Sequence record: NC_041973.1
Direction: 5' to 3' (one strand)
DNA length: 64,000 nucleotides
How positions within the stretch are numbered: position 1 is the stretch's first letter; each line of letters begins with the position of its first letter. The position numbers and the translations under genes were made by a program. The notes beneath the pieces are model-generated. The model saw only the letters and a list, made by a program, of their open reading frames with translations. It did not search any database and was not told the DNA's origin. Positions 8,037 through 62,200 of the stretch are shown here, piece by piece.

Positions 8037-9170
8037 ATGCAGTACAGTACCTTTAATACCACTAAAAACGATCAGATGGCTGAACCGATGTTCCTGGGTC
8101 AGTCGGTTAACGTCTCACGTTATGATCAGCAGAAGTACCCCGCGTTCGAAAAGCTGATTGAGAAACAACTTTCATTCTTCTGGCGCCCTGAAGAGGTGGA
8201 TGTTTCGCAAGACCGTATCGACTTCCAGGGGTTACCGGATCATGAGAAACACATCTTCGTGTCTAACCTGAAATACCAAACCCTGCTGGACTCGATTCAG
8301 GGTCGTAGTCCGAACGTGGCCCTGCTGCCGATCTGTTCTATCCCGGAACTCGAAACCTGGATTGAAACCTGGGCGTTCTCTGAAACGATCCACTCGCGCT
8401 CATACACCCACATCATCCGTAATATCTTTACTGACCCCTCCATCGTGTTTGATGACATCGTGACCAACGAACACATCAAAGCGCGTGCTGAGTCCGTCAC
8501 GGAGTATTACGACCAGCTGATTGAAATGACCATGTACCTCAACTTACTGGGTGAAGGTACTCATGTAATCAATGGTAAGAAAGTCGTGGTGTCGATGCGT
8601 GCTATCAAGCGTCTGGTCTACCTGTGCATCGTGTCAGTCAACGTGCTGGAAGCCATCCGCTTCTATGTCTCCTTTGCCTGCTCGTTTGCCTTTGCTGAAC
8701 GCGAGCTGATGGAAGGCAACGCCAAGATCATTAAACTGATCGCCCGTGATGAAGCCCTGCATCTGACCGGCACCCAGCACATGATCATGTTAATGAAGTC
8801 CGGTGCTGACGATGCTGAGATGGCGGAAATCGTTAAAGAGTGTGAAGCAGAAACATACGCACTCTTTAAGGACGCTGCAGAGCAGGAGAAAGACTGGGCG
8901 AACTATCTGTTCCAGGATGGGTCGATGATCGGTCTGAACAAAGAGATCGTGTGTCAGTACATCGAATACATCACCAACATCCGTATTCGCGCCATCGGTT
9001 ACGATGACATCTACGCCGGTGTCAAAGCTAACCCTATCCCGTGGATCAACTCCTGGCTGGTTTCTGACAACGTGCAACAAGCCCCTCAAGAGTCAGAGAT
9101 TACCTCGTATTTAGTAGGTCAGATCGACTCAACTGTCGATGCAGATGCGTTTGATAACTTCGAACTTTAA
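8037..9170 (+). CDS. nrdB: Ribonucleotide reductase class Ia beta subunit
   Basis: [48 protein letters not shown]-terminal SYLVGQIDS; closely resembles enterobacterial NrdB. Confidence 0.98.
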
Positions 9171-9227: not shown

Positions 9228-10061
9228 ATGTCTGAGATAAAAGATAACCCGGATAACTGGAAAGTGATTCCGGGTTACTCACGTTATGAGATCAACGAAG
9301 TCGGCGTTGTAAGAAAGATACATAACAAGAAGGTGATGAAACAATGGCTGCGTGGTAATTATACCGCCACTGCTATCACTTCTGATAATAAGTCAACTAG
9401 TAGAATAGAATCTATTCATATTTTACTGTGCCTTACATTTATTGGTCCAAAGCCCTTACCTGAACCTGGGCACAAACTTGTTACCGCTAACCACAAGGAC
9501 GGTAACAAACTTAACAATGTGAGGTCTAATGTAGAATGGTTATCCAATTCTGGTAATATTCTGCATGCTTACAAGAACCGGCTAAATAAATCATCACAGC
9601 ACCTGCGTCTAACCAATGTGGTCTCTGGTGAAGTTGTCGACCTGCATTCTTACCGCGAATTATCCAAATGGATGGGTAATCCTAACCTGCGCGGAAGAAT
9701 GGAGTATCTGAAGTATCGTAACAAGCTTTATCAAGGCCAGTGGCGAATAGAACTTCTTGGCGAATCAGAGAAGTCTTCAGGGTCTCGTACCAGTAAACAA
9801 GTATGCGTAATGGATGTGGCTAAACGACTTGGATTGAGGGGTGGTGAGTTTGATACTTTCATCTTTAATTCCATGCATGATGCTGCAGCGGCATTAGGCG
9901 TAAGTCGCAAAGGTATTGGTCGGTCGATTAGTACCAAAGGACGCCATGTTGTAAATGGGTACGCTATATCGCTATCATTTGACGATATGACTAATATCAC
10001 TTATGACAAAGCGTATGTGGAGATTAGTCTTAAATGGGCGAAACTCAGGGGTAAGAAGTAA
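9228..10061 (+). CDS. Free-standing HNH homing endonuclease (NUMOD4-HNH type)
   Basis: WKVIPGYSRYEINEVG (NUMOD4-like); ANHKDGNKLNNVRSNVEWLSNSGNILHA (HNH); FNSMHDAAAALG (NUMOD1-like); AT-richer codons than neighbours. Confidence 0.9.
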   Translation: MSEIKDNPDNWKVIPGYSRYEINEVGVVRKIHNKKVMKQWLRGNYTATAITSDNKSTSRIESIHILLCLTFIGPKPLPEPGHKLVTANHKDGNKLNNVRSNVEWLSNSGNILHAYKNRLNKSSQHLRLTNVVSGEVVDLHSYRELSKWMGNPNLRGRMEYLKYRNKLYQGQWRIELLGESEKSSGSRTSKQVCVMDVAKRLGLRGGEFDTFIFNSMHDAAAALGVSRKGIGRSISTKGRHVVNGYAISLSFDDMTNITYDKAYVEISLKWAKLRGKK

Positions 10062-10129
10062 GTTCTTATCTGGTCGGTCAGATCGACTCGAAAGTGGACG
10101 CCAACGATTTCGACGATTTCCAACTGTAA
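10055..10129 (+). pseudogene. nrdB: Stranded second copy of the nrdB 3' end
   Basis: Translates [24 protein letters not shown], 17/24 identical to the last 24 aa of nrdB; no start codon. Confidence 0.9.
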
Positions 10130-19262: not shown

Positions 19263-19310
19263 AAAGGGGTCTGGTGAAAGCCATATCCCTTTTGGTTATG
19301 CTGTCTTTTT
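19263..19310 (+). terminator. Terminator with TTATGCTG tail and T-run
   Basis: AAAGGGG..TGG-TGAAAG-CCA..TCCCTTT then TTATGCTG and T tract. Confidence 0.65.
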
Positions 19311-19399
19311 TTTTTGGTTAAGAAATACTAGCCTTCTCCATTATATGCAATTTACACGATACACTTTTCTATTTACTACATCGGCAAGAGAGATAAGAC

Positions 19400-19543
19400 A
19401 TGAGCGCACCTGAAGAATTTGATATGGACGGCCTGGAATCACTGGATCTGGAAGGCGCTGAGAAAGCGGCAGAAGAGAAAGCAGCCGGCGGTGGCGAAGC
19501 CCTGTCTGATGGCGAAGCAGATTGCGAAGGTTGCAAGATCTAA
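19400..19543 (+). CDS. 47-aa acidic peptide ending in a CxxC-K-I NrdA-tail-like motif (not in ORF track)
   Basis: MSAPEEFDMDGLESLDLEGAEKAAEEKAAGGGEALSDGEADCEGCKI*; GAGAG upstream; strong CTG/GAA/GGC phage codon bias; fills an otherwise empty gap. Confidence 0.8.
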   Translation: MSAPEEFDMDGLESLDLEGAEKAAEEKAAGGGEALSDGEADCEGCKI

Positions 19544-19973: not shown

Positions 19974-20585
19974 ATGTTTAAACGTTTCATGTTCTATCTG
20001 TTCAGTAAGTTATTTGACCATAAAGGGGAGTACACCATGTCCGAAGCAGTGAAAGATCAGCAAAGCAATGATGTTAATGCAACCAACGATGTTGAGGTGC
20101 AGCCAACACCTGCTGAGACCTCTGCACCGGAACTGGCATCTAACGATGTGGTTGCCGCACCGGAAGCCGCAGGCGACGCCCGTCCTGAAGTCCAGGATAC
20201 GGTAGAGTCGACGCCAGTGGTGATTGAACCGGCTGCAGTTGCTGAACCATCCGCACCTGTCGTGGCACCTGCTCCTGTTGTTGTACCTGCGGCTGAGCCA
20301 GCTCCCGCACCTGTAGCACCGACCACCCCGACCGACAGCGATAAGACTGAAGGCGAACCCGATACCAATCGCTTCGACCATCTGGCCAGCACCTTGAAGA
20401 GTTTACTTCAGGTAGCCGGTCATGAGCTCGACGAAGCATTTGACGATGCAGTACCTTTGGCAAAACAGATCGCTTCCAGTGACGAAGAGTTCGGTGACAA
20501 GCTGAAAGGCATCCTTGTGGTTGTCGGCCGTGAATACGGCGAAGCTTTCCATCATTTCTTCAGCTATGCGAAGAAGCACATCTAA
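19974..20585 (+). CDS. Pro/Ala-rich protein with tandem helical C-terminal repeat; second start at 20037
   Basis: RBS-like sequence before both ATG 19974 (GAGGTG) and ATG 20037 (GGGGAG). Confidence 0.8.
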   Translation: MFKRFMFYLFSKLFDHKGEYTMSEAVKDQQSNDVNATNDVEVQPTPAETSAPELASNDVVAAPEAAGDARPEVQDTVESTPVVIEPAAVAEPSAPVVAPAPVVVPAAEPAPAPVAPTTPTDSDKTEGEPDTNRFDHLASTLKSLLQVAGHELDEAFDDAVPLAKQIASSDEEFGDKLKGILVVVGREYGEAFHHFFSYAKKHI

Positions 20586-21668: not shown

Positions 21669-21713
21669 GGGCGCGGAATCGTATAGGTGCTTTTGCCAAC
21701 GAGGAATCTTATC

Positions 21714-22496
21714 GTGTTTGAAATGCTTTTAGGCGGTAGTCCGAACGGGAACTTGCCATTTGGGCAGTTGTTAGCCAAAACAACAACAGACTTTACAGTT
21801 CCTGCCGGAGTGACCGATATTTCCGGTGTTGCTATCGGTGGTGGTGGTGGTAACTCACGCGGCAATACCATTGGTGGGTCAGGGGGTGATTTACGCTGGC
21901 GTAATCACATTGCCGTTATTCCAGGTGAAGTGCTGTCACTTATTACCGGTGTGGTAACAGCTGCTGGGAAACCGGGCACCTCCAGTAAGATCATCCGTAA
22001 GTCAACCGGCGAAGTATTACTGGTCGCTAAAGGCGGTGACTCCACTGATGTATCAACACCGATCAATGGAGCTGATATAGGTGGCGGGAACGGTGGTGCT
22101 GGCACCAATCCATCAGGTGGTGGTGCTGGCGGGTATACCGGCAATGGTGGTAAAGGTGGTTCAGCTGCCGATGTTGATTCTGGTGGTGGCGGTGGTGGTG
22201 GTTCTTATACCTTCAGCGGAAACAGTTTTGGTTGTGGCGGTGGTGGTGTCTACCCTAACGGTAAAGGCGCTGATGGTGGCGCACCCCCTGTCAATACCGG
22301 CAGTCAGGCGTTTGGTGGTAAAGGGGGTTCTGGTGGTAATCCTGGTCAAAACACGAATGGGGGCTTATACGGCGGCGGCGCTGGCGCACCCATTAGGATA
22401 ACCTTTGCAACAACAGGGACTGCCGGCTGCATCAGACTCATCTGGGGTTCGGGTCGTGCTTTCCCAGCTACGAAGACCGCAGATATTACAGCATAA
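21714..22496 (+). CDS. Glycine-rich virion/fibre-associated protein, paralog of 33992..34831
   Basis: GAGGA RBS before GTG 21714; FTVPAGV..GGGG N-domain, Gly-rich core, G.IR(L/I)IWG.GR(A/S)FP end. Confidence 0.75.
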   Translation: MFEMLLGGSPNGNLPFGQLLAKTTTDFTVPAGVTDISGVAIGGGGGNSRGNTIGGSGGDLRWRNHIAVIPGEVLSLITGVVTAAGKPGTSSKIIRKSTGEVLLVAKGGDSTDVSTPINGADIGGGNGGAGTNPSGGGAGGYTGNGGKGGSAADVDSGGGGGGGSYTFSGNSFGCGGGGVYPNGKGADGGAPPVNTGSQAFGGKGGSGGNPGQNTNGGLYGGGAGAPIRITFATTGTAGCIRLIWGSGRAFPATKTADITA

Positions 22497-59285: not shown

Positions 59286-62200
59286 TTAGCCATTACCGTA
59301 CTTGCGAGCAAAGCTCACCGGTGGTGTACCGGCACCACTGGCAGGTGCTTGCGGTGCCGCCGGTGCAGGTTTGTTCAACATCTGGGTTTGCACCGCAATG
59401 AACTGCTTCATGATCTCAACCAACGAGTTCATGTTATTGTCGATGTTCGCCAGGTGGTCTTTACTGCCAGAGATCGCCGCAGCAGACTCTTTCGGTAAGA
59501 CCGGTACGGGTGCCGGTGCAGGGGTAACTGTCGTGACCTGCGGGGCATTAGGAACCTGCCCTTGGGTCGGTTGCATGCGAGGAGGTGTGTTAAGGGTTGG
59601 GGTGGTTGGTGTTGGCGTAGACGCATCAGCGGCTGCTTGCTTATCGATAGCCGATGCCGTGGAGTCTTTGGCATTCGGTGTCGATGAACCTGCAGAAACG
59701 GCTGCGGCTACACTTGGTCCACTTGTTGACTTCAATGCTGGCGCATCACCCTGGCCCGGAGGTGGTGCTACGGCATTAGCCGCAGATGCACCCGGTGCAG
59801 TCAGCTCAGCTGCCGTCTTCGCGCCCGACAATGCCGGAGTAGAAGGCCCGCTCTGTGCTTGACCGGATGCCAAGGTTTGTGCCTGGTTATCCTCAGCTGC
59901 ATCACCTTGTGGGCCAGCAGACTGATCTTTACCCGAGAGAATGTCATCAAACTTCCCAGTCCCCATTAGATCCGTATACTGTTTGAACAACTGACCACGT
60001 TCAGCTAAACCGTGTGTCCCGCCGTTAACCAATTTGGTAACAGTATTCAGATCCCCTTTCTTCGCAGCTTCCTCAATCCCATTACGCGACTTCCAATACC
60101 ACAGTGCTGACTTCGCAGCCATGGTTGGGTCAGTCGAGAGTTTATCGGGATCGGACACCAGGTCAACGCCAAGGCCTTTACTGGCGGCTGCGTAGTTGGC
60201 TTTACCGGTCAGCTGCATGAAGCCACGTCCACGGTACTTCCAACCATCTCCCGGTTTGTCGTTCCCCATACGACCGCCATAGATCGAGTTGGCAATCGCC
60301 ACTGGACCCGCTGTCGCTAACTGCTGCGCAGCTGCCAGGGTGGGGAAGCGGTTAGGCCAGAGCCTCATCAGAGTCTCTGCTTTATAACGCAGGTTCTCTT
60401 CGAGTTTGCTAAAGCCTCCGGACTCCAGGTGAGTCTGGGCCAAGAGCATGGCGAGTTCTTGTTTATCCGTAATGCCGGACTTCATGGCTTCACGAATCAA
60501 GATACGCGCACCCTCTTCAGCACCTGGACCTAACTTAATCGGCCCAACCTTCCCGGTGTTGTCAATCCCCCCGCCTGCACCTGCCGCACCACCTGCCGCA
60601 CCGCCACCATAGGCTGTCTCGATACGTCCCGTTTCCGGGTTGTATGTTGTTACCTGACGCTGAGAGGTATAGACTTGACCGGTACTCGTCTTCACCTGGT
60701 TGTTCACCATGTTACCGGACGAGTCCTTACGCCAATCTTTCTCAGTAGTGCCATCGGCCCGTTGTTGCACACCGCCTTTTACCGCTTCAGCAGAATACTG
60801 CGCTTGTTTGACTTGTGCCTTCAGGTTATTCAGGTGGTTTTGAACAACAGAGGCATCATCATTAAGTTCACCGGTTGACCACGGCGAGGTCTTAATGGTC
60901 CAAACAGAGATCGCATTCACGCCATCGCTGTATTTGGCATTGGTTATCGCTGTCGCTGCAGCGAACTTCAACTCAGGTGGCATCTTCGGTACAGCAAGCG
61001 TCGGTCGACTGTCTCCGGTCTGGGTATATACCGTGCTGGCAAACGCTAAGTACGCTGGTAAGAAGCGACGAGTAAACCACGGCTCCCATGATTTGTAAGA
61101 CCACTGGTTGGATGGACTCAAACCAAAGCTTGCAGCAACAACCCGGTAGATGTCTGAGGCTTTACCGTCAAACGTCGCACCGTTATCGGCAAACTTGATC
61201 TTGTTCGCCATCACCAGTTCCAACTGCAGGAGTGTCGATACACGATCAACATCCAACGTTGGCAGGCCGTACACTTTCATACGCAGCGCAGTGAGGTCAT
61301 CCATCGCCTGACCGGCTTTAGGCAGCAAACCACCTAAGAGATCCCCGGCACTGACCACAGTACGATCACCGGTAAACCACGACGACTCTTTATGCCCAAC
61401 CGTTTTCAGCTCAGGGATATCGCCATTTGGGTTAATGGCTTTGACCATGTCACTGCTGAGTTCACGACTGGAGGCAACCTTATCCATCCCGGTTGCAAAG
61501 ACCGACGCTGATTTCCCCGTGGTCATCTTCTGAGCTTTGTTGCGCAGACGATCCAGCACATCTTTTACCAGCGCTTCGGTCTGTTTGCGATCGGTTGCAT
61601 TCAGATCCGGGAAGATACGACCAGTAAACATGTACGGGTGATCAGATGACTCATCGAACTGTTGTGCGCGTTTGGCGATCTCGTACTTTGCCGCTTCATC
61701 CGTCGACTTATCCAGATCCATGAAGGCCTGGCTTGGGAGGACTTGTTTCGCCACGGCTTTGTGGGTCAGGTAAACCGGTTTGAAGCGATGCAGGAACCAA
61801 CCCGCGAATTGCTCCACTTGCTCACGGTCATTCGGGTCATCAACAAACAATGAACCGAGTTGGGCGATTGGGGCTTTCGGGTCGAGTGAGGCATAGCCAT
61901 CATCGGTGGTTTTGACATACGGCTCTAACGCGGCTTCCAACTTCAGGATGGCCGAGACATGACTGGAGTCATTATCCGGAACACCATACTGACGTAGACG
62001 CATCTGCTGCAGTAAGCCCGGGTCATTAAACCAGGTGTATAAAGAACGACCGATAGCGCCGCCCCCTAATGCACCAATGGCCCCGCCAGCAATAGCACCG
62101 ATGGCTGTACCAACAACCGGCACAACTGAACCGATAGCGGCACCCATCGCCGCACCACCCAGAATACCACCAACACCGGAGCCAGCTGCTTCTGCCACAC

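Follow-up and report, generated by a model that had tools for sequence, protein, structure and literature searches.

What could a phage peptide of 47 residues do that ends like the α subunit (NrdA) of a class Ia ribonucleotide reductase (RNR), when the phage has no nrdA of its own? The question is raised by positions 19400–19543 (+ strand) of the 64,000-nucleotide stretch of DNA analysed here (the window), which corresponds to record positions 62001–126000 of Erwinia phage vB_EamM_RAY (KU886224.1). RAY is a jumbo phage of the genus Agricanvirus with a 271-kb genome, and the chimallin and PhuZ it encodes mark it as nucleus-forming.

The end of NrdA matters for the catalytic cycle. In class I RNRs the active-site cysteines are oxidised with each turnover, and a cysteine pair on the tail is re-reduced by thioredoxins or glutaredoxins (PMC4078304). 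The tail cysteines of the α subunit reduce the active site and are themselves reduced by thioredoxins, and the partners in re-reduction are reported to differ between organisms (PMC11903788).

A conserved, strongly acidic small gene

The open reading frame (ORF) is already annotated as RAY_108 (gp108, ANH51889.1), a "hypothetical protein" of 47 codons with an ATG start and a TAA stop. It matches PHROG 10239 over its full length (E 9e-30) and is kept in every Agricanvirus genome. Pairwise dN/dS against three diverged relatives lies between 0.18 and 0.39, which argues for purifying selection. These observations confirm that the ORF behaves as a real gene.

Fifteen of the 47 residues are D or E, three are K and none is R, giving a net charge of about −12. 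The C-terminus reads D-C-E-G-C-K-I-stop, and C-x-x-C-K-I-stop has a single match in the whole 64-kb window, with 0.02 matches expected. An AlphaFold2 model built on a 36-sequence alignment predicts a single helix (residues 17–31) and coil elsewhere, with a mean pLDDT of 64.5. The pLDDT is lowest over the tail, where the last 17 residues are modelled as coil at values of 53–57. An earlier note, made from the letters of the window, had described an acidic and flexible ORF with this ending, a description that the translation, the charge and the predicted coil bear out. The strong codon bias it had mentioned is also there. All four leucines are encoded by CTG, eight of ten glutamates by GAA and all seven glycines by GGC or GGT. 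The CAI-like index relative to window usage is 0.876 and tops all 29 reference ORFs (maximum 0.846), a noisy measure at 47 codons. This codon use suggests that gp108 is highly expressed. The peptide is missing from the proteins listed by lysate mass spectrometry of RAY and Deimos-Minion (PMC6690015), and the literature on RAY and its relatives that we searched does not mention it. Trypsin is predicted to cut gp108 into long, acidic fragments, and this may be why the list lacks it.

Three parts can be told apart. Residues 1–29 (19400–19486, + strand) hold an acidic and hydrophobic motif, E-E-F-D-M-D-G-L-E-S-L-D-L-E, followed by a helix-prone stretch of A, E and K; this part is common to peptides encoded in bacterial chromosomes (see below). 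Residues 30–40 (19487–19519, + strand) form an acidic flexible linker, G-G-G-E-A-L-S-D-G-E-A, which, with the tails set side by side, parallels the acidic [RE]-D-G-[AG]-G-E stretch that follows the catalytic domain of phage NrdA. Residues 41–47 (19520–19540, + strand) are the terminal heptapeptide D-C-E-G-C-K-I with its cysteine pair, Cys42 (19523–19525, + strand) and Cys45 (19532–19534, + strand).

Searches of Pfam, NCBIfam and PDB sequences with the peptide returned zero matches. One could suspect a small redoxin of the thioredoxin, glutaredoxin or NrdH kind. This can be dismissed since the CXXC is not embedded in a thioredoxin fold: the model consists of one helix and coil, and neither Pfam nor the PDB sequences hold a match. 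We also considered the N-terminal motif as a mimic of the C-terminal tail with which NrdB binds the α subunit. Scored with a hidden Markov model (HMM) of six NrdB tails, the peptides do no better than shuffled sequences, and the idea was rejected.

An ending shared with NrdA

The earlier note had likened the end of the ORF to the redox tail of NrdA. In most class I RNRs the tail spacing is CXXC, and E. coli represents the CX4C type (PMC9669993). NrdA as encoded at the E. coli nrdAB locus ends in G-C-E-S-G-A-C-K-I. In gp108, the spacing C42-E-G-C45 followed by K-I-stop fits the CXXC type.

An exact scan of IMG/VR for D-C-E-G-C-K-I-stop returned 92 stretches, 80 of which were read as loci. Four of the 80, namely L018, L060 (Escherichia phage Lw1), L068 and L079, encode true class Ia NrdA with nrdB next in line, and these proteins share 47–60% identity with E. 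coli NrdA. One NrdA from a MAG that is just 31% identical to E. coli NrdA ends in the same heptapeptide. Short free-standing acidic ORFs resembling gp108 account for 15 loci, longer acidic proteins for three, proteins with a Pfam PF13876 (N4 gp49/Sf6 gp66) domain and a matching acidic tail for six, and other small tail-bearing proteins for three. About 49 of the 80 are prophage-like contigs with a common, non-acidic and unrelated frame that happens to end in D-C-E-G-C-K-I; we counted it as a single inherited coincidence.

The likeness extends upstream of the heptapeptide. In BLASTP, the 15 C-terminal residues of Lw1 NrdA are matched by residues 30–47 of gp108 (E 2e-4), and the 17 C-terminal ones by residues 32–51 of Y3_038, the homologue in phage Y3 (E 2e-5). 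The latter alignment spans the R-D-G-x-G-E stretch.

A second IMG/VR scan, for C-E-S-G-A-C-K-I-stop, gave 29 loci, mostly true NrdA. Seven of them encode free-standing peptides of 54 aa, in Alexandra/pEa_SNUABM-type E. amylovora jumbo phages and in Dickeya phage AD1. These Alexandra-type peptides occupy the locus position of Y3_038 and are 59% identical to it, but carry a CX4C tail. Their end, D-G-C-E-S-G-A-C-K-I, matches the final ten residues of Erwinia pyrifoliae NrdA exactly, and in BLASTP their residues 32–54 align to residues 735–761 of Erwinia NrdA (E 5e-6). Hence, a single orthologous phage gene comes with one or the other natural spacing of the NrdA tail. We regard this switching between tail types as the strongest evidence that the end is a copy of an NrdA tail and not a chance motif.

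With true NrdA ending in the heptapeptide, the alignments to Lw1 NrdA and the Erwinia-like ends of the Alexandra-type peptides, the reading of gp108 as a tail mimic is strongly supported at the level of sequence comparison. Neither the catalytic barrel of RNR (PF02867) nor an ATP cone nor any other Pfam domain was found in gp108. Hence, gp108 would work like the tail or imitate it, and is not itself an NrdA. A recent copy of the 3' end of a host nrdA at the DNA level was considered too and set aside, as blastn against 5,426 E. coli genomes gave only chance matches to tolA.

Homologues in bacterial chromosomes

A scan for D-C-E-G-C-K-I-stop in bacteria, with one genome per species, gave at least 120 matches. 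Free-standing ORFs of about 43 aa make up 111 of the 120 matches listed (81 distinct sequences), and a single one of the 120 is NrdA. The chromosomal peptide starts with a D-D-[IM]-F-[ED]-F-D-I-D motif, continues with an A/E/K stretch and ends in D-C-E-G-C-K-I. Among the matches listed, the gene is present in one copy per genome in Erwinia, Pantoea, Tatumella, Mixta, Izhakiella, Serratia, Rahnella, Ewingella, Rouxiella, Sodalis, Hafnia, Budvicia, Leminorella and others, and so spans the Erwiniaceae, the Yersiniaceae and related families of the Enterobacterales. Its presence was confirmed in E. pyrifoliae, E. piriflorinigrans, E. tasmaniensis and other species.

Three comparisons link gp108 to this family. 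BLASTP of gp108 against the Erwinia peptide P0012 gives 55% identity (E 5e-9). Profile alignment (hhalign) of the phage set to the bacterial set gives a probability of 98.2% (E 5.5e-14), and 59% (E 9e-5) once the last seven residues are stripped from both sets. The bacterial HMM scores gp108 at 14.8 bits, both without their last seven residues, a score reached by none of 2000 shuffled sequences. These comparisons support homology of gp108 to the chromosomal family, and a homology that is not confined to the tail.

The chromosomal gene lies in conserved synteny. Among the matches listed, DUF808 is a neighbour at no fewer than 62 loci, YlaC at a minimum of 33 and CvrA at 20 or more; GlpM, NhaB and DcuA occur as neighbours as well. 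These are unrelated membrane proteins, and at the loci examined no RNR, redoxin or enzyme gene lies next to the peptide. A −10-like hexamer, a Shine-Dalgarno-like sequence and a strong intrinsic terminator accompany the gene in the sample of loci we inspected. The databases name all homologues "hypothetical" or "uncharacterized", and neither Pfam nor NCBIfam has a model for the peptide. The E. coli gene ypaB, which also has 47 aa and lies beside nrdA, was considered as a counterpart and is unrelated in sequence.

The earlier note knew of no characterised stand-alone protein of this kind, and this holds within the literature that we searched for tail strings and descriptions. However, gp108 is not peculiar to phages; it belongs to a large family that includes single-copy chromosomal genes of bacteria related to the host. 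As judged from sequence, we are dealing with an undescribed family of free-standing proteins with NrdA-like tails that is common to Enterobacterales and their phages.

The family in phages

Homologues of gp108 are found in Erwinia phage AH06, in Y3 (Sasquatchvirus, 51 aa) and on several contigs of uncultivated jumbo phages. In Pantoea phage AAM37 and its relatives, which belong to the 50-kb Dibbivirus, the homologue has 41 aa. In pEa_SNUABM_5 (Rivsvirus) the gp108-type end closes a hyper-acidic protein of 208 aa. The N-terminal parts of the phage homologues vary in length and have the acidic and hydrophobic motif in common, to which the jumbo phages add G-G-G-E-A-[LI]. The last seven residues are fixed across members of the D-C-E-G-C-K-I type, with D-C-D-G-C-K-I in Y3.

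The earlier note had made its reading depend on conservation of the gene and of the cysteines. Both are found: the gene is present in all Agricanvirus genomes, in other phage genera and in bacterial chromosomes, and across more than 100 family members neither cysteine varies, nor does the K-[IV] end, while the remainder drifts. Such a pattern fits a redox-cycling dithiol that is recognised by a site which is itself highly conserved. Among 1.84 billion representative proteins, a profile search recovered 25 clusters, all of small proteins, whose tail variants give the core C-x-[GS]-C-K-[IV]; none of the 25 contains a fusion to an enzyme. gp108 itself shares with the family its length (41–54 aa), the N-terminal motif, the A/E/K helix stretch and the C-x-[GS]-C-K-[IV] end. 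In our view gp108 is very likely a translated, largely disordered and strongly acidic peptide whose last 18 or so residues copy the redox tail of NrdA, and a member of a so far undescribed family of free tails.

In RAY, an NTP pyrophosphohydrolase gene lies to one side of gp108 and thymidine kinase to the other; nrdB and DHFR are each 10 kb away. The immediate neighbours of gp108 have no domains recognisable with Pfam or NCBIfam. The 170-nt gap between gp107 and gp108 contains a hairpin (19263–19292) and a T-run (19306–19315; together 19263–19315, + strand), with an RNA fold of −20 kcal/mol (z −2.75). This terminator-like structure means that gp108 probably starts a new transcription unit. The hairpin came from folding; a simple consensus scan around gp108 found neither a sigma-70 promoter nor a terminator above background. 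In Y3, pEa_SNUABM_5 and four more jumbo-phage lineages, no more than a few kb separate the free-tail gene from dCMP deaminase, thymidylate synthase or thymidine kinase.

Which RNR could be the target?

The earlier note had proposed a shuttle for a tail-less or split phage NrdA. This proposal fails because there is no such enzyme. A tblastn search of the whole RAY genome with E. coli NrdA found no nrdA, and neither does the annotation contain one, so whether a phage NrdA lacks its C-terminal cysteine pair does not arise. The sole RNR gene in the entire annotation of RAY is nrdB (RAY_88, class Ia β subunit, 8037–9170, + strand; Pfam PF00268, E 1e-52). Its product is 76% identical to E. coli NrdB and conserves the C-terminal tail that binds the α subunit, which leads us to infer that it would pair with the NrdA of the host. 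Y3 and AAM37 have no class I RNR at all, with neither nrdA (tblastn with E. coli NrdA) nor nrdB in their full genomes. Hence, all three peptide-bearing phage genomes examined in full are without NrdA, and in the two IMG/VR tail scans no contig carries both a tail-bearing NrdA and a free peptide.

The hosts' enzymes are complete. The NrdA proteins of Erwinia pyrifoliae, E. tracheiphila and Pantoea have 761 aa and their own E. coli-type tail intact. With no cognate α subunit lacking a cysteine tail in RAY or in Erwinia and Pantoea, gp108 is not part of a split RNR. Given that RAY has no NrdA and host tails are intact, any RNR target of gp108 would be the NrdA of the host. Class Ia phages with nrdB only are rare, and phages frequently carry single rate-limiting steps (PMC3653736). 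RAY also carries thymidylate synthase, thymidine kinase and DHFR. When the small CXXC-containing ORFs of RAY were screened crudely for a phage redoxin, only zinc-ribbon-like proteins came up, which is a weak negative.

A proposed diffusible dithiol relay

The role we favour, with a probability of roughly 0.4, is that gp108 acts as a diffusible dithiol relay between host glutaredoxin or thioredoxin and host NrdA. The reduced cysteine pair would enter the active site of host NrdA in the way that NrdA's own tail does, and would reduce the disulfide that remains there after each turnover. Oxidised gp108 would then be reduced again by glutaredoxin or thioredoxin of the host. RAY, without an NrdA of its own, would thus add an extra β subunit (nrdB) and an extra, diffusible tail (gp108) to the host's enzyme. 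In this role gp108 would be an auxiliary metabolic gene that speeds up the re-reduction half-cycle of host RNR and provides more dNTPs for a 271-kb genome, and it would be the phage copy of a host accessory factor. The identity of the tail, the family with its distribution and the RNR genes of the phages are read directly from sequences; the docking to NrdA, the redox cycling and the direction of the effect are those parts of the proposal that we infer.

Several lines of evidence support the relay. The tail is identical to that of true NrdA and is swapped between both natural tail types. The cysteines are invariant, RAY, Y3 and AAM37 have no NrdA, the gene lies near genes of dNTP metabolism, and codon use points in the same direction. 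Divergent NrdA proteins keep the heptapeptide even though re-reduction partners are reported to differ between organisms (PMC11903788), and hence the most economical reading is that the conserved partner of the tail is the active-site region of NrdA. The redox chemistry of α tails is established (PMC11903788), and class II enzymes with a separately encoded C-domain, nrdJb, exist (PMC5704485).

Other observations argue against it. Since the NrdA tails of Erwinia and Pantoea are intact, the need for a second, diffusible tail is not obvious, and a free peptide does not have the high local concentration of a tethered one. A plain shuttle does not need to be attached to small folded domains, as the tail is in PF13876 and other proteins, where it rather resembles a targeting tag. 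In bacteria, neither RNR nor redoxin genes adjoin the free-tail gene, and gp108 is absent from the list of lysate proteins.

For the family as a whole we tentatively suggest that free NrdA tails may be unrecognised diffusible partners of class Ia RNR, either cofactors or regulators, encoded by a core gene of many Enterobacterales that phages have captured repeatedly and that also serves as a portable tag. We hold this wider proposal to be about as probable as the relay itself. Under it, phages without NrdA would use captured free tails, of either variant, to drive or commandeer the NrdA of their host.

Inhibitor, address tag or accident?

The main rival to the relay is a competitive inhibitor or decoy. 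A free tail could plug the active-site channel of NrdA or titrate glutaredoxin or thioredoxin, and so damp or redirect host RNR or redoxin-dependent processes. The identity of the tail with that of NrdA fits this equally well, the host tail is already present, and a tail grafted onto several unrelated folded small phage domains suits a module for targeting or blocking. There is also a precedent of this kind in yeast, where Sml1 acts on the regeneration step at the C-terminal CX2C of R1 (for context, PMC6382339). We nevertheless think that inhibition is somewhat unlikely. Lower dNDP synthesis is of little use to a phage equipped with nrdB, thymidylate synthase, thymidine kinase and DHFR of its own, and a pure plug does not need both cysteines to be invariant. 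Moreover, the chromosomal gene stands alone with its own expression signals and shows no sign of belonging to a regulated module.

One could also argue that the end is an address: it would recruit a redoxin or dock onto NrdA, while the real activity would reside in the acidic N-terminal part or in added domains, for example as a regulator, an adaptor or a peptide that buffers metals or thiols. The N-terminal parts of tail-bearing proteins do range from 41 to 223 aa while the end stays constant, the acidic and hydrophobic motif is conserved beyond the tail, and no bacterial neighbour points to RNR. However, the shortest family members consist of little beyond motif, helix and tail, with no detectable domain, and the test of one specific role for the motif, mimicry of the NrdB tail, proved negative. 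We consider an address tag unlikely as an account of gp108.

A precursor of a ribosomally synthesised and modified peptide (RiPP), with an acidic leader and a conserved cysteine-containing core, would explain the small size, the leader-like N-terminal part, the invariant C-terminus and the G-G-G of the phage versions, but it is very improbable, because RAY, Y3, pEa_SNUABM_5, AAM37 and the bacterial loci have no adjoining maturase, protease or transporter, the genes nearby encode unrelated membrane proteins or hypothetical proteins in which Pfam recognises no domain, and the core is the unmodified end of a known enzyme. Just as hard to credit is that gp108 is what remains, in decay, of the 3' end of a vanished nrdA, or that the ORF exists by chance and is not translated. 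In favour of this, RAY has no nrdA, the homing endonuclease next to its nrdB has left behind a duplicated nrdB 3' end, and the C-terminal 18–20 residues look derived from the end of nrdA. Yet the ORF has a dN/dS of 0.18–0.39, is conserved in several phage genera and, with its own expression signals, in bacterial chromosomes, has its N-terminal motif in common with the bacterial family, and lies 10 kb from nrdB behind a terminator-like hairpin.

Comparison with known systems

To our knowledge, re-reduction of RNR through the α tail has always been treated in textbooks as intramolecular or intradimer. gp108 resembles the tail of class Ia NrdA in its acidic flexible stretch, in its cysteine pair (CXXC or CX4C across the two tail types) and in its matching last residues. 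It differs in that the NrdA tail is joined to the α subunit whereas gp108 is free and has an N-terminal motif of its own, common to the bacterial homologues.

The nearest precedent for a free tail is NrdJb of the split class II RNR (NrdJa and NrdJb), where the re-reduction cysteines likewise reside on a separate gene (PMC5704485; PMC9669993). NrdJb is a folded zinc-finger domain of 150–220 aa that pairs with a tail-less NrdJa from the same genome (PMC5704485; PMC9669993). The free-tail peptides, in contrast, are disordered and have 41–54 aa; RAY encodes no NrdA, and the cognate enzyme retains a tail of its own.

A rewiring of the reductant supply of class I RNR at the level of genes is also described for Facklamia ignava, where a glutaredoxin domain is fused to NrdB (PMC6187632). 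In Facklamia a folded redoxin is fused to the β subunit, and gp108 is a free, substrate-like tail with no thioredoxin fold. Phages commonly carry auxiliary genes of nucleotide metabolism, and RAY fits this pattern with nrdB (without nrdA), thymidylate synthase, thymidine kinase and DHFR. Unlike these, gp108 encodes no enzyme, and the host's version of it is uncharacterised as well.

Small disordered regulators of RNR are known from yeast. Sml1, Spd1 and their relatives are inhibitory and have been proposed to act at the large subunit and its C-terminal regeneration step. A sequence relationship to gp108 was neither expected nor found, and these proteins are not known to carry the cysteine-pair tail itself.

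What free tails would mean for RNR biology

If gp108 and its relatives are diffusible partners of NrdA, then the re-reduction half-cycle of RNR has a soluble player that has been missed, in Enterobacterales (plant-associated ones and others) and in at least half a dozen unrelated types of phages. Should the peptides turn out to be inhibitors, bacteria and phages would have their first counterpart, in logic, to the small RNR regulators of yeast. The family offers a handle on a small core protein, so far uncharacterised, that Erwinia, Pantoea and Serratia encode, and on a short, portable peptide by which proteins may be directed to RNR or redoxins. It also offers a handle on how phages that carry nrdB only, or no RNR at all, exploit the NrdA of their host.

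Results and Discussion

Our scans of bacterial genomes (loci L110-L229) show that free-standing homologues of gp108, the 47-aa acidic peptide of RAY that ends in D-C-E-G-C-K-I, also occur outside phages. Bacterial chromosomes carry one copy of a gene that encodes an acidic product of some 43 aa with the same ending (e.g., L140:4515-4643, minus strand), and among the matches listed its holders are Erwiniaceae, Yersiniaceae, Hafnia, Budvicia, Leminorella and Sodalis. At the loci inspected the gene is accompanied by a −10-like hexamer and an intrinsic terminator, and every copy among the matches listed is annotated as hypothetical. A Pantoea stewartii chromosome (L165) and locus L070 encode the peptide in a phage-type form (M-D-D-F-D-L-D-F-I-G-D-L...), while other Pantoea have the usual chromosomal type. 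The P. stewartii variant presumably lies within a prophage.

The D-C-E-G-C-K-I ending also closes a conserved, non-acidic frame of 134 codons, present at about 49 IMG/VR loci (e.g., L021, L022 and L024) on prophage-like contigs of 20-50 kb. This ending is probably one inherited coincidence, and the frame may not be a gene.

In RAY, the gap between gp107 and gp108 contains a terminator-like hairpin followed by a run of ten Ts (window 19263-19315, plus strand; hairpin z −2.75), which a consensus terminator scan did not call. Among the proteins encoded downstream on the same strand, gp110 (19974-20585) is of low complexity and rich in Pro, Ala and Glu, and gp112 (21687-22496) is glycine-rich and repetitive.

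The product of the class Ia nrdB of RAY (8037-9170, plus strand) shares 76% identity with E. coli NrdB; no nrdA is present anywhere in the RAY record. Erwinia phage AH04 (L230) and Serratia phage PCH45 (L231) also have a solitary nrdB, in that NrdA is not encoded within 4.5 kb of it. The presence of nrdB without nrdA may be common among jumbo phages such as these three.

Beside nrdB lies gp89, an HNH homing endonuclease (9228-10061, plus strand). Exactly at its stop, and overlapping its end, 24 codons from the 3' end of nrdB are repeated (10055-10129, plus strand), with 75% identity to E. coli NrdB residues 353-376. This second copy looks like the footprint of an endonuclease insertion that doubled the end of nrdB. 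Within the single genus Agricanvirus (matches H56-H72), nrdB exists as two alleles: proteins of the RAY type and those of the Deimos-Minion type are only 77.5% identical. This split matches the reversed HNH/nrdB order reported in PMC6690015.

The acidic NrdA-type tail is not confined to free-standing peptides. In phage proteins it follows a Pfam PF13876 (N4 gp49/Sf6 gp66) domain or small folded N-domains of other kinds (L045, L054, L073, L085, L094 and L095; also L049, L083, L053, L232 and L260), and either variant, CXXC or CX4C, occurs there. In these proteins the NrdA-type tail acts as a portable module.
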